From positions 1 to 64,000 of the forward strand of contig NW_026782457.1 in NCBI RefSeq assembly GCF_031769215.1: a DNA stretch of 64,000 nt, in the 5' to 3' direction. Of this stretch, positions 10 through 63,494 are shown one piece after another. The position numbers were made by a program, and so were the translations under genes. This DNA is from Ylistrum balloti (Eukaryota). Positions within the stretch are counted from its first letter, which is position 1, and each line of letters begins with the position of its first letter. The notes below the pieces were generated by a model. It searched no databases. It was not told where the DNA came from and saw only the letters and a list, made by a program, of their open reading frames with translations.

Positions 10-3000
10 CCATTTTTGAAATTATTCCGTCATCCATGGCTATGACTAAATCTGCTTCACCAAGGAATTGAGTGTGATGTGTGCAAAGGATTCTGGTCTT
101 GTGCTTTAGTAATCCCATGATGCATTTGTCATACATTTGTTGTGCCACGTGAGCGTCGACGGCTGCTAAAGGGTCATCGAGAAGGTACACATCTTTATCC
201 TGTAAGAGTAAGATATCAAGTTATACATGTACAAATTGACAATGAGTTTGTTTCATCGCCTTAGGATAATAATACATCACCGAAAAAAGTATAACAACGT
301 TACAAATTGGCTTTATCTATTTCTGAATGTTACAATGAGTATTATAACAGTAAATAATAACAAACAGTGTTTACCTGATATAATGCCCTAGCTAGAGCAA
401 GTCGAGCTTTCTGACCTCCGCTTAGTGTTACGCCATTCTCACCAACTTCCGTCTTATCTCCAGCTGGTAACATCTAAAAGAGTAAATCAAGAGCGTGTTG
501 ATATTTCTGCAGTTGTTGCATCGTCCATTTCATAGAACAATACAATTGGTTGATAACAAACGCAAAAGTATTATTTATTTACATTGTTCATACAAACCTC
601 GATATCTTTTTTAAGAGATGCGGCGTCAACAACCTCGGCGTATTTTCCCGCGTTATACGGACTGCCAAAGATAATGTTGTCTCGGACAGATGCCTGTTGT
701 ATCCAAGGTTCCTGATCCGCCAAAGCAAACCCGTTTTTCAGATTAGACACAGAGATTTCGCCTTCTTTCCGAGCCATTTCGGCAAGTATAGCGTTGAGGA
801 AGGAACTTTTACCAGAGCCAACTTTCCCAATCACTCCTATGAATTGACCCTATTAATGAAATAAATGTTTGTTGAAATTTAATTTTGTGTTGATAAAATT
901 AAAAAAAATGATATAAATTACTCTTTATTTCGGCTAGACTTATATTGATCAATATTTGCTACTCACTTGAGTAATGTCAACGGTTATATCCCGAAGACAA
1001 AGTGTTCCTGATTTACTGGTTGTCTCCCCTGACTCGCATTTTGGTTTTATCTCGTTTTCGTTTGAATCAGTGTTATCCACCTTCTCTCCTTCCCAAGTAA
1101 ATCGTCCAGTATTTACCGAAATCACACTGTCGCATTTCCTCGATTCTGTAATCAAAGAATTACATCAAAATCAGATATATTAATGTTAAATCATAACAAC
1201 TTTCTAATCGCGTATAGCTACTTAGTACCGTTTCATCTGCATTAACATTAAATTTTACCTTTCATTGTTTCGTAATAAGCATCAAGGTCAATATCTTCCA
1301 ATGCCACGAATTTCTCTATCCTTCCAAGTGAAATGACGGCTTCCATTATGCCATTGAATACCCAAGGGAGATGATTAAGTGATCCAAGGAGTTTTAGAAA
1401 CAATGCCAGACTTGCAAACATCTGTAAAAATTCACAAAAGTAGAGAACATTGGTAACGTAACATTCCAAACATCTTCGAGCTTTAGATATAAAGTTGAAT
1501 ATTTCCAAACAATTTCAAATGTAACAGCAGAGAATTTATATTCTATGGTTTTTACCTTTGAAGCGGACAGGGTATTTCCCATCATTGAGTAGGAGCTGAA
1601 TGTCAGTACGGTCATAAAGATCGGAGTCAGAGTCCACAAGTATCCAGTTATGGCTCCAATTACTTTTCTTCGTTTAATGATCTGCAACTCAGCGTCACGA
1701 AGTTCATTAATCATCTTTTGAAAGTGGTCTTCCCAGGTGTAAAGTTTGATGATCTTTATTCCGCCAAGCACCTCGTTCATCAACTATGGAAGCAAAATAA
1801 ATCATCAATATATCAATGATATTGCTGTCGATCTGAGAATGAAAGGTTATCAAAACCAAAATAAATTTGGATATGAAACACCTATCCGAGTCAAGATTAC
1901 AATCCAAGGAATCGATTTTTTATCTTTTTAAAAATCTATAGATTGGAATAATACATACCTTCGTTCTCTTGTCTTTCTGTTCCATTAGCACTTTGCCTAG
2001 TGCAATTTGTTTCGTTGATATGATCTTGTTTATGGGAACGAGAATCAGGGCAACAACTAGTCCTCCCAACATTGCAATTCCAACCAGTTGATACAGAATA
2101 TACATACATATAATGGTTTCGAAAGGTAGACTCCATAAAGCATGGAAACAATGACAGAAGCCCATCATTCTATCAGTATCAGTCCCGAGAAAATTGACAA
2201 TCTCACCAGTACTGAATTTCGATAAAGACACGGTGCTTATACGCAAGGCTTTCTTATAAATAGCTGTCATAATCGAAATTCTCACTTTGAAAAAGACATG
2301 CATACGGGTGAAATGAAATTTGCTGTCTAGCAGAGCTTTTCCAAAACTCGACAAGAACAACAGGAAGGCATAGCGATATCCGGTGTGTGATGGCTCGTCA
2401 CCATTTTCGAAAAATGACAACAATAAACCAAGTGAGATAGGACCTGTGAAATTAATCAGGTGCGCTACCAACTCTAGAAGACCACAAAGAAGAAAGTATT
2501 CTAGTCCGTAGGCTTTGTATAATGCACTAAGTAAGGTCGGGTTCTTCTTGTCTGTTTTCATACCAATATTCACTCCTGGTTTCAGTTTTTTGGAAAACTC
2601 CTCCTGTACTTTCTTTACGTTAAGACTGTTTGGCATTTTAAACATGTCTTCAGACGACAGACTGGTCGTTTTACTGTCCTTCATCAGAAGGGGTTGTACC
2701 CAGTTATAGGTTAACCTGGACAGAATGGAGACATCATCCTCATTGGCCGGGTAACTGACTGCGCAGGAGGTTGGATCCGTCTCTTCATCCTGATTTTCCT
2801 TCTGATTGGAAGACCTTTTTTCTTGTGATAATTTCTTAGTGAGGAAATAGATAATGAACGCACTGATGAGAGTTACCAGAACATTGACAACGGTTGACGC
2901 TGTAGTTGTAAAATGTTCCTCTGTAACAATGCCATGATGAACTATAGATTGGTTACTTTGCAGCAATTTTATATTAGCTTGATTGTACAAAGTGACGTTG

Positions 3001-3056
3001 TTGTCATTCACCGTGATTTCTTTCAGACGCAAAGTTCTCCAGAATGTGTGCTCCAT
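10..3056 (-). CDS. ABCC10: ABCC10/MRP7-like ABC transporter, copy A (5' part only: N-terminus, TMD1, NBD1; gene continues off the left edge)
   Basis: Coding exons (high to low): 3056-1959, 1783-1556, 1421-1259, 1145-967, 849-598, 473-375, 199-10, all with AG/GT boundaries and frame-compatible lengths (1098, 228, 163, 179, 252, 99, 190). NBD1 Walker [11 protein letters not shown]-loop QEPWIQ, signature [14 protein letters not shown], Walker [13 protein letters not shown]-loop CTHH. TMD1 motifs ([28 protein letters not shown]) resemble ABCC10 as I recall it. Confidence 0.92.
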
Positions 3057-3519
3057 CTTTTCTATCTGAAAATAAACAGATCATATAATTATATGTAACT
3101 TATAATAAATATCGTATACTTAATTAAATTCATACGTAAATTATAGAACATTTTTGGTTGTAAAATGCCGTTTACATGGTACATCACCGTTCTTGCATGT
3201 CTTTCATTCAAGAAATAAGCAAAATCTTATCAATAATATCATAATCAGATTGAGGCTTTGTTAGGTCTATTTCACACGTTAATAAACTAACATCAGTACT
3301 ATATCAATGTGAATTTTAATTATCAACTATATGTTTTATCCATAGCTACATAGGTCTAATTTACATTAAGTGTTGCATATATTGAAATGTGTTACTTCTT
3401 ACTGTCAAACAATGGTTTACAATTTGGTTTTATATCTAAAAATATTTCTGATTTGATTTCTCTTTGGTTCACTTTAAATCACAACTTGTGATATAAATAG
3501 TTACCTTTAGAGAACGTAC

Positions 3520-3736
3520 CTGCAAGATTTACTGATTGTGGTTTCAGCGATAAATTGAAGGCTACAAGTTCTTTCTTGGTCCGTACCAGCCGAGCTGTAT
3601 GACCAAGTTAGTGCTACCCGTCATTTATATAACTATCTGGTACAAAAAACCCGAATTCATGACTCTTTCTGATTTCCCTGATTCTATACTAAGGGGATTT
3701 TTTTAGACGTAAATAGAACTGGCATTTGTGACGTAG
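3520..3736 (-). promoter_or_regulatory. Predicted core promoter and ATG-free non-coding first exon of copy A
   Basis: Minus-strand donor CAG|GTACGT with the exon ending at 3520; TATATAAA at 3624-3631; Inr-like GGTCATACAG about 25-30 nt downstream; GGGGATTTTT (kappaB-like) at 3693-3702; TGACGTAG (CRE-like) at 3729-3736. Acceptor ttttcag lies 9 nt before the ATG. Confidence 0.6.
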
Positions 3737-61693: not shown

Positions 61694-61955
61694 TACGGAG
61701 CCCGTTAACTGACATGCTCCATACTTATATTATTTCGATAAAACGAATTATTATTTCAAAAAAACGAAATAATATTTCGAAAAAACGAATTAATATTTCG
61801 AAAAAACGAAATAATATTTCGTTTAAATGAATTGTTATTTCGAAAAAACGAAACAATATTTCTAATAAACGAATTAATATTTCGTTTAAACGAAATAATA
61901 TTTCGAAAAAACGAAATAAAATAAGTATGGAGCATGTCAGTTAACGGGCTCCGTA
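61694..61955. mobile_element. 262-bp non-autonomous DNA transposon (IS3EU-like) with 35-bp perfect TIRs and an internal 21-bp tandem array
   Basis: TIRs at 61694-61728 and 61921-61955 (tacggagcccgttaactgacatgctccatacttat); 6-bp direct repeat TGATAA at 61688-61693 and 61956-61961; TAC...GTA ends; interior built from aaaaaacgaaataatatttcg-like units. Confidence 0.8.
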
Positions 61956-62573
61956 TGATAATTACATGTAGCAACATAATTTTTTATTTATATAAAATCC
62001 CTTTTGTAAAATCTTTATCACTGGTTTCAATGCATGTCCACCTGTAAAAACATTACACACGTGTATGTATTTGTAGGTGTGTTTTTCATTGATATGAGAC
62101 ACTTTTCAGGTAAACCTGTATATATGTATATATGTAGGTAGACAGCTACAATATTTCAGTATGTCAATTTTAATGTAAGAAGATAAAGTTTCCTATAACA
62201 CTTTGAAAGTATACACCACATCTGGTCATCACTTTACAATAGAAGGGGCCAGAATTTAATCATTTCTATGTCTAACCTTCTTGTAAGCTATCATATCAAT
62301 TTGGATTTCTGCTGTAAATTTAGAGTAGATAAAATGCACTGAATGTCATGATTCATAAACAAAATTAGAAAGCTTAAGAAGTAAGCAAATGTTTTGATTA
62401 AAACCTAAAAGATTTCTCATACCCTTAAAATAATTGATAATCTGTACATCTTCTCATATGCATAATGCCTTTTTCCTATATATGTGTCATTTAAAATCTT
62501 TTCTATAATCAGGTTCAAATCTTAATTTTCTGATGGCTATGAGATCTGTTGAAACAGCTACTTTAAATTGGTG

Positions 62574-63494
62574 TTAACTTTCACCATGTACCAGTTTGTA
62601 AAACAAAGAGTGCGAGTTTTGTAGCAGGACCCTCGGAGAGTCCAGTTCAGCCACTTGACCCTGGTCCATCACCAACACCCTGTCACTGTCCATTATGGTG
62701 TTGATTCTATGGGCAATGGTCAACACTGTACTCTCCACAAACTCCTGGCGGATTGTTTCTTGTATCAGCATGTCCGTCTCCAGATCTACACTGGCTGTAG
62801 CTTCATCTATACAAAGTACCTTAAACGGATGAAAGCAACGATTACATATCCATATCACTATCAACATGATAAACCACATGTCCACAGCAAGGTTCAGATA
62901 CAAAATACAAACAAACTGGTTTTGTTTTATTTTCTGATCAAGCCAAAATTATCATCTATTGATAGTTTATGCTTAACCATTATCAGAAAACGTTTGCTAT
63001 AAACTTTGTGTTCATGTATGACACAAACTCTGAGCAGTCCTTCAGAGCAGAAAATACAATAAAATTCTACATGATATGGATGCCAATGACAGAGAAGAAA
63101 ACAAATCTTCATAAGCAGCTGCTTTTTATTTGTCTTATCATTCTTTCTAAGGGTTCTACAAGCACACCTTTCTTTTGTTCAAACTTTGCTCTTTTCTCAA
63201 CAACTCTAAAACAGATTTGTTAGTACTTCAGAACTTCAGAATTTCCCCACCTTTGCTTTGGTAAGAAGTGCCCTTGCCAGACACATAAGTTGCCTCTGAC
63301 CAACAGAAAAGTGCCGTCCCTTTTCTGCCACCTCCCCCTCGAGTCCTCCAAGTCTGTCTACAGGTAGGCGAAGGTGGCATCTGTCCAGGACACCCCACAG
63401 TTCCTCGTCACTGTAACAAGACGTGGGGTCGAGATTCTCCCTGACGGTACCACTAAAGAGGAATGGGTCCTGAGGAATCACAGCCAGATGTCGT
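62574..63494 (-). CDS. ABCC10: ABCC10/MRP7-like gene, copy F, last two coding exons (NBD2 C-terminal half); remainder off the right edge
   Basis: Exons 63494-63251 (244 nt, [15 protein letters not shown]...[20 protein letters not shown]) and 62819-62574 ([12 protein letters not shown]...[15 protein letters not shown]). Same boundaries and phases as exons 16-17 of B-E. Confidence 0.9.

Follow-up and report, generated by a model that had tools for sequence, protein, structure and literature searches.

A tandem ABCC10 (MRP7) gene cluster in the scallop Ylistrum balloti that probably joins a canonical long gene to a scallop-specific short subfamily

Expansions of ABC transporter genes are common in invertebrates, and spider mite and sea urchin are among the animals with lineage-specific tandem expansions in subfamily C (ABCC). 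ABCC10 (MRP7) is normally low-copy, and while truncation studies on ABCC1 found its N-terminal domain TMD0 to be dispensable for transport and the L0 linker to be needed, we know of no role assigned to the TMD0 of ABCC10. Scallops, which are used as food, build up both algal toxins and cadmium, and our subject is an ABCC10 locus from one of them, Ylistrum balloti. The DNA analysed (hereafter the window) is the first 64 kb (positions 1 to 64,000, forward strand) of a 230,364-bp contig (NW_026782457.1; C600 in the coordinates below), has a G+C content of 34% with a single N run (209 N) and holds ABCC10-like genes only. We describe its gene structure, orthology, synteny, sequence constraint and conversion signal, and regard it as highly probable that we are looking at a genuine tandem cluster at the ancestral ABCC10 locus, in which a canonical long gene (F) stands beside a short daughter subfamily (A-E) specific to Pectinidae. 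With vertebrate ABCC10 the cluster has in common the orthologous group, the domain order, the asymmetric nucleotide-binding domains (NBDs) and the L0 linker, at an identity of 42-45% as measured on the Pecten maximus homologue. Unlike vertebrates, however, where ABCC10 is usually single-copy, Ylistrum has at least eight such genes, and all but F are without ~160 residues that make up TMD0 helices 1-4.

When exon 1 of copy B was compared with the whole assembly, nine exon-1-like places were found, namely those of A, A2, B, C, D, E, F, G and H only. The match for F lies past the window end at C600:75.5-76.4 kb, the copy on contig C196 (home of A2) is 100% identical and two matches (G, H) fall on contig C763. 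For the gene models, exon cores were obtained by translating B and matching to E, and splice sites were set by frame, GT-AG and fit to Pecten maximus P0001. The genes and tracts concerned are as follows (window coordinates unless a contig is named).

2..3056, minus strand: copy A, short ABCC10-like, exons 1-7, open, truncated at the contig start
7450..14317, minus strand: copy B, complete short ABCC10-like, 17 coding exons, 1389 aa, identical to XP_060078897
14317-13220, 13025-12798, 12663-12501, 12387-12209, 12091-11840, 11715-11617, 11443-11254, 11088-10864, 10702-10582, minus strand: exons 1-9 of B
10446-10254, 10128-9913, 9713-9586, 9353-9184, 9023-8866, 8724-8471, 8306-8063, 7701-7450, minus strand: exons 10-17 of B
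19473..26357, minus strand: copy C, complete short ABCC10-like, 1389 aa, identical to XP_060078899
30244..37258, minus strand: copy D, complete short ABCC10-like, 1384 aa, identical to XP_060078896
45143..54651, plus strand: copy E, inverted short ABCC10-like, 1377 aa, head-to-head with D
53947..54651, plus strand: exons 16-17 of E, tract homogenised with A-D, 92-95% nucleotide identity to B
62574..64000, minus strand: 3' end of F, with exon 17 (62819-62574), exon 16 (63494-63251) and part of intron 15
C600:77091..62574, minus strand: full gene F, 17 coding exons, 1582 aa, first exon 1563 nt (521 aa)
C196:5973-12657: A2, complete, 1390 aa, identical to XP_060067114
C763:47655-58364, plus strand: G, short ABCC10-like, 1389 aa, identical to XP_060081599
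C763:61766-72678, plus strand: H, short ABCC10-like, 1383 aa, in tandem with G

B, C, D and E each consist of 17 coding exons with GT-AG introns throughout and zero internal stops, and their exon lengths are equal except for exon 1 (D, E), exon 4 (E) and exon 17. A first-pass annotation of this DNA had seen six copies of one identical 17-exon architecture. That holds for B-E, while A is cut at exon 7, F attains 17 exons only beyond the window, and several exon lengths of F differ from those of the other copies (the first exon measures 1563 nt compared with 1098 nt in B). Its statements that B-E keep open frames with intact NBD motifs (detailed below), that E is inverted and that F lies tail-to-tail with E all agree with our models: the minus strand carries A-D and, again, F, which extends past the window end, and the plus strand carries E. 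The model of A comprises the first 736 aa and, like those of B, C and D, is residue-identical to a RefSeq protein named "ABCC10-like" (XP_060078902, partial, in the case of A). The genes of the cluster have thus been annotated before, and potential novelty may lie in their evolutionary reading. In our literature search, to which most subscription journals were outside coverage, no paper was found on an ABCC10 expansion in scallops or bivalves and nothing relevant on the Ylistrum balloti genome. As a side observation, an AG directly precedes the start codon in A, B and C (3057-3058, 14318-14319, 26358-26359), so that an upstream non-coding 5' exon is possible and the total number of exons is perhaps higher than 17.

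Orthology was assessed with a maximum-likelihood tree (IQ-TREE, LG+G4) of 48 proteins and 1527 columns, with support given as UFBoot/SH-aLRT and an outgroup of ABCC1/2-type, fungal and plant sequences (ABCC4/5/7/8/9 being absent from the tree); a quick version had the same topology. All cluster genes come to lie within the metazoan ABCC10 clade (100/99) and apart from the ABCC1/2-type, fungal and plant sequences, which upholds the assignment of these genes to ABCC10 in the first-pass annotation: A2-E are inside ABCC10 and do not group with ABCC1/2-type proteins. The ranking by bit score agrees. In a search with the Pecten homologue, scallop MRP7-like/ABCC10-like proteins are on top, a second tier at 1100-1470 bits is formed by ABCC10 of abalone, oyster, chiton, sponge, coral, sharks, fishes and birds, and the first differently named matches (MRP1, ABCC2, fungal) do not exceed 870 bits; an exhaustive search with exon 1, done without profiles, also gives two match tiers.

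Within ABCC10 there is a molluscan clade (100/100) in which oyster is sister to all scallop sequences (99/98). F is sister to the P. maximus long form XP_033736230/1 (100/100), being 89% identical to XP_033736230, and this pair of long proteins is in turn sister (100/99) to a short clade of 21 scallop-only proteins that sits on a long stem (0.61) with 100/100 support. The short clade divides into three subclades, supported by 100/100 each and each with several scallop genera. One, the oldest of the short lineages, unites G and H with Argopecten P0178/P0179 and Mizuhopecten P0177, another E with Argopecten P0174 and Pecten P0173/P0176, and the last A2, B, C and D with Mizuhopecten P0172, three Argopecten and three Pecten proteins. 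E thus has orthologues in P. maximus (XP_033736228/9) and A. irradians (P0174; 100/100), and in the A-D subclade copies tend to cluster by species, with Ylistrum A2/B/C/D monophyletic (100/100). Judged by this tree, A-E together with G/H are a Pectinidae-only short subfamily of ABCC10, and F is the canonical long form with the order TMD0-L0-TMD1-NBD1-TMD2-NBD2. F was previously counted among the products of the radiation, a view that is not compatible with its place next to the long P. maximus protein.

The long and the short proteins part at the N-terminus. Alignment against F and the oyster, abalone and shark proteins, together with hydropathy, shows the short proteins to be without ~160 residues that represent the first four hydrophobic segments of TMD0 (transmembrane domain 0), whereas the first exon of F (521 aa) aligns along the entire TMD0 of oyster, abalone and shark ABCC10, and the long N-terminal region, in which five hydrophobic segments are seen in oyster and shark, is preserved in F. 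What the short forms do keep is an N-terminal tail with 'FWxxL' and an NxT sequon, like canonical proteins, one hydrophobic helix (B residues ~55-73) that aligns to the last TMD0 helix, and a conserved L0/lasso block ('NEDxxSxLSxLTxxWVxPLL') that aligns with canonical proteins. Retention of this one helix suggests that the N-out/L0-in topology is preserved. The five-helix TMD0 of long-MRP architecture is found in F only and not in A-E, G or H, which would make the latter members of ABCC10 by descent, not by architecture. In an AlphaFold2 model of exon 1 (mean pLDDT 64) a long helix (46-87) is followed by a disordered stretch, two helices (111-129 and 147-158) and the TMD1 helices, and the best fold matches of this model are ABCC1, Ycf1, ABCC2 and ABCC4.

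Downstream of the N-terminus, the transporter core appears complete. Pfam, consulted on single exons and in precomputed form on the identical RefSeq proteins, finds two ABC_membrane and two ABC_tran domains in the full subfamily C order TMD1-NBD1-TMD2-NBD2, and two Walker A plus two signature motifs are present in every model. In 8/8 genes (A2 and B-H) NBD1 carries GKVG(S/A)GKSS, LSGGQ and LLDD, and NBD2 carries GRTGSGKSS, FSVGQ and CIDEA, with H-loops. The ATP-site asymmetry typical of ABCC is seen as well, with 'YLLDDP' in NBD1 (Asp for Glu), a degenerate 'FSVGQ' in NBD2 and the catalytic Glu in 'CIDEAT'. With open frames, intact motifs and dN/dS well below 1 (see below), the copies look functional, and most likely all of them encode working ATP-driven exporters; transport activity, substrates and expression we infer.

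The layout of the cluster recurs in other scallops. RefSeq ABCC10-like/MRP7-like arrays of Pecten maximus, Argopecten irradians and Mizuhopecten yessoensis contain the same three short types plus one long gene, and A-D-type genes are in tandem in each of these species. On A. irradians CM084266.1 a 1377-aa gene (minus), the E-type gene P0174 (plus) and a 1572-aa gene (minus) stand head-to-head and then tail-to-tail, which matches D(-)/E(+)/F(-) in the window, so that both the order of these genes and the inversion are recovered. In P. maximus (LR736840.1, 50.12-50.19 Mb) the succession is P0151 (minus), P0001 (minus), P0176 (E-type, plus), a 1389-aa gene (minus), P0152 (minus) and a 1364-aa E-type gene (plus), and from there consecutive accession numbers continue to the long gene XP_033736230. 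In Pecten an entire block made up of two A-D-type genes (minus) and one E-type gene (plus) appears to have been duplicated, and its E-type genes P0173 and P0176 are mutual closest relatives. From the arrangement in Argopecten and Pecten it follows that the inversion and the adjacency to the long gene predate the split of these genera. The A-D-type sets are each species' own (A/B/C/D in Ylistrum, three genes in Argopecten, four in Pecten). Taking tree and gene order together, the radiation of the short genes and the inversion would predate the split of all four scallop genera sampled, and the A-D amplification alone would be specific to Ylistrum. The lineage-specific radiation put forward at first therefore stands in that the short clade is scallop-only (100/100) and falls in that, apart from A-D, it is not specific to Ylistrum. 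Several rounds of duplication are likewise evident from tiers of synonymous divergence between ~0.02 and 1.8, while the inversion once listed with them is old and common to Argopecten.

Synonymous (dS) and non-synonymous (dN) divergence was estimated pairwise by the Nei-Gojobori method. Among A2, B and C, dS is 0.018-0.028 with dN/dS of 0.13-0.27 (C differs from B at 15 residues, with dS 0.018 and dN/dS 0.27). B-D comparison gives dS 0.27 and dN/dS 0.25 at a protein identity of 86.8%, B-E gives dS 1.1 and dN/dS 0.19 at 69% identity, and B compared with G/H gives dS ~1.8 and dN/dS ~0.15; for B-F, dS is saturated. Over whole genes pairwise dN/dS stays between 0.07 and 0.32 in all comparisons, and per domain it ranges from 0.07 to 0.6, with the top values in the N-terminal stub and the lowest in the NBDs. 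Such ratios argue that the copies evolve under purifying selection; selection for new substrates or dosage, as had been proposed, is not indicated by pairwise dN/dS.

Divergence is spread unevenly along the genes. Between B and D, per-exon dS forms a mosaic in which exon 2 is 100% identical, exons 3, 6, 14 and 17 have dS of at most 0.1 and the others 0.15-0.6. Between B and E, dS is 0.18-0.34 in exons 16-17 and 0.55-0.76 in exons 5, 6 and 15, and exceeds 1 in the TMD exons. Third-position identity of B and F amounts to 70-73% in exons 16-17 as opposed to ~35% elsewhere, and exon 17 of G and H is 98.8% identical compared with 56-93% in their other exons. A tree built from the DNA of exons 16-17 unites Ylistrum A2 and B-F (94-97) and keeps them separate from E and F of Argopecten and from the A-D-type genes of Pecten. 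Applied to this tract and to clades picked with the tree in view, the approximately unbiased (AU) test rejects a clade of E orthologues (p=0.005) and one of A-D orthologues (p=0.003). A protein tree of the C-terminal 175 aa was unresolved, and the C-terminus of the P. maximus X2 isoform differs. Because exons 16-17 group by species and dS is mosaic, we attribute the pattern to gene conversion, which has homogenised parts of the genes, so that the levels of divergence are not clean duplication ages; within-species monophyly of A-D, too, may be owed in part to conversion. E had been described as much more diverged in its TMD exons, and with dS >1 there it is, albeit that the contrast is partly made by homogenisation of the NBD exons. 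Taken as an array, the locus has head-to-tail whole-gene units as well as tracts in which paralogues are closer than orthologues and dS is locally low.

At the level of DNA, self-BLAST reveals head-to-tail units, with B displaced from A by 11,244 bp and C from B by 12,023 bp. Identity among these three copies is 96.6-97.7% over 4-8 kb that include exons, introns, ~2 kb 5' of the ATG and part of the spacers, and their near-identity down to the introns, noticed in the first-pass annotation, is thereby confirmed. D resembles B at 78-87% in blocks of up to 3.3 kb, and E matches the other copies at 67-75% in most exons and at 94-95% in the last two. Contrary to the notion that D introns are mostly unalignable, 68.5% of B intron bases align to D (at ~80% identity), compared with 14% that align to E. 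The spacers contain two features of note.

6289..7006, no strand: 240-bp tandem repeat, 3 copies, in the A-B spacer (TRF)
28387..28595, no strand: assembly gap, 209 N, in the C-D spacer, intergenic and AT-rich

A shorter version of the 240-bp repeat (18467-19215, 87-92% identical) is found in the B-C spacer, which has in addition ~1.6 kb (16855-18466) without counterpart in the A-B spacer and measures 5.2 kb compared with 4.4 kb. By repeat copy number and by the extra ~1.6 kb, the two spacers are structurally different. Lying close to the edge of the duplicated unit, the 240-bp repeat could be a substrate for unequal crossing-over. The gap is situated 2030 bp upstream of the C ATG and 1649 bp downstream of the D stop and is crossed by no exon or frame; the upstream segment common to A, B and C stops ~280 bp short of it. 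Apart from these features, short AT-rich tandem arrays are seen in the C-D and E-F spacers (29598-29775, 59201-59354 and 61727-61919, with periods 15/27/42, 35/70 and 21/63, respectively). Past the window end, twelve 38-bp tandem units (C600:64500-64956; TRF) begin at the donor end of F exon 15 and extend into intron 15; each unit holds a donor-like GGTAGGT on the gene strand, and the period is not a multiple of three. Pfam gave no family above threshold in spacer open reading frames of at least 90 aa in the window, and Rfam at gathering threshold gave none anywhere in the 64 kb.

How might such a cluster have come about? In the scenario that we favour, the short form would have originated from ABCC10 after the oyster-scallop split, when an in-frame loss in the first coding exon took ~160 residues (TMD0 helices 1-4) and left the transporter core in full, preceded by a short extracellular N-tail, a single membrane helix and the L0/lasso linker. 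Three short lineages (the A-D, E and G/H types) would have been in place before the four sampled scallop genera split, and by that time the inverted E gene would have had an A-D-type gene on one side and the long gene on the other. Re-amplification of the A-D-type gene in Ylistrum would have followed, as a ~12-kb unit and probably via unequal crossing-over (our inference as to mechanism), with D the first to split off and A, B and C very recent. Conversion among the members would keep overwriting tracts, chiefly in the two final NBD2 exons, and the exons of the membrane domains would meanwhile diverge.

Several of our own observations weigh against this picture and deserve to be set out together. 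The outgroup of the protein tree is limited, without ABCC4/5/7/8/9, and the AlphaFold2 model of the N-terminus is of modest confidence (pLDDT 64). For exons 16-17, an F-orthologue clade is not quite rejected (AU p=0.063), which makes the conversion signal marginal there, and all AU p-values are weakened because the choice of clades followed inspection of the tree. Adjacency of C and D rests on a scaffold join over an unread gap. The divergence of A, B and C (dS 0.02-0.03) is in the range of bivalve heterozygosity, and with the array reaching the contig end, neither how many A/B/C-type units there are (3 to 5) nor how exactly they are arranged is secure. Lastly, as regards expression, the public runs found are DNA-like contigs, which over B cover introns and exons alike, with no joints at the modelled introns.

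The points on unit number feed an alternative that we consider unlikely, namely that A, B and C, in whole or in part, are an artefact of assembly, with divergent haplotypes placed in tandem or a longer array collapsed or broken. They diverge by 2-3% only, the array begins at the contig end and a gap follows just past C. Read as its reverse complement, C196:1-9038 matches C600:1-9584 at 97-100% identity; it repeats A together with the 3' portion of a B/C-like copy. C196:1-12657 comprises A2, the near-identical complete counterpart of A whose contig overlaps the start of C600 at 99.1% identity, plus the last five exons of a B/C-like copy. The overlapping part of C196 shows a mosaic of B-like and C-like stretches; it is most similar to A and the A-B spacer, and its first 2 kb are slightly nearer to C than to B. 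The overlap may reflect either diverged haplotypes or extra array units beyond C600, and this ambiguity is why the number of A/B/C-type units comes out as 3 to 5. Moreover, the Logan contigs of four DNA samples break up over B into 200-900-bp pieces with many variants. On the other hand, A, B, C and the C196 pieces amount to at least three mutually distinct sequences, with A, B and C within one contig, and spacers of unlike size, an unequal number of 240-bp repeats and ~1.6 kb in the B-C spacer only would be unexpected of a haplotype duplicate. The chromosome-level assemblies of Pecten and Argopecten have several tandem A-D-type genes each, and D is plainly a separate gene.

To a second alternative we assign a similarly small chance: the cluster could be real, with most of the young copies redundant, silent or on the way to pseudogenes and their frames kept by youth and by conversion from an expressed neighbour. 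With dS of ~0.02 and 15-20 amino-acid differences, A, B and C offer few substitutions to inform dN/dS, and conversion is demonstrably active. Five public runs were available as contigs only, none recorded as RNA, and four of them (from two studies) were compared with 7450-13449 (Logan contigs); their coverage of introns and the absence of intron-skipping joints identify these contigs as DNA, and what they establish is that B-type sequence is present, with many variants, in several DNA samples. D (dS 0.27), E (1.1) and G/H (1.8 to B), however, are old enough to have decayed, and yet their frames, GT-AG introns and motifs are intact, their dN/dS to B is 0.14-0.25 and orthologues of each type are kept in three other scallop genera. 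That the genes come from another ABCC subfamily (ABCC1/3-like or ABCC4/5-like) and are ABCC10 merely by automatic name is scarcely credible, since a PDB sequence search with exon 1 does return ABCC1, 2, 3, 4 and Ycf1 at similar E-values with no chain named ABCC10, and the short N-terminus is superficially like that of short MRPs, but the tree nests all genes in ABCC10 and in molluscan ABCC10 with near-maximal support, F is closest to the P. maximus long form with oyster and abalone ABCC10-like proteins as nearest non-scallop relatives, and ABCC10 bit scores (vertebrates, sponges) are >300 bits above any other named subfamily.

Returning to a genuine cluster of one long gene and a short subfamily, a bolder extension is conceivable that we hold to be rather unlikely: scallops may have evolved a new architectural class of ABCC exporter, an ABCC10 with a single-helix 'mini-TMD0' in three lineages, re-amplified per species, in which the ATPase engine is kept uniform by conversion and divergence falls on the membrane domains that bind substrate. 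If true, this would amount to a modular widening of efflux specificity, perhaps for algal toxins or metals. An expanded exporter family is a reasonable candidate for studies on toxin handling in scallops. The cluster may also serve as a natural experiment on TMD0, in that most of the domain has been deleted across an animal family and the product kept, multiplied and long constrained, which bears on the purpose of TMD0. With conversion mainly confined to the NBD exons of a transporter array, it would be a clean example of concerted evolution, too.

Compared with systems already described, the locus is an interesting and fairly ordinary gene-family expansion. Like the short MRPs (ABCC4, ABCC5, ABCC11, ABCC12), the short scallop proteins have no five-helix TMD0 and an L0/lasso before TMD1. 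They are not kin to these by descent, however, since the scallop forms have their origin within ABCC10 and, ahead of L0, retain a single helix and an N-tail with NxT sequons. As in spider mite and sea urchin, full-length ABCC exporters have been duplicated in tandem in a filter-feeding or xenobiotic-exposed animal, whereas the scallop case involves the low-copy ABCC10 and is tied to a change in domain architecture and to gene conversion.

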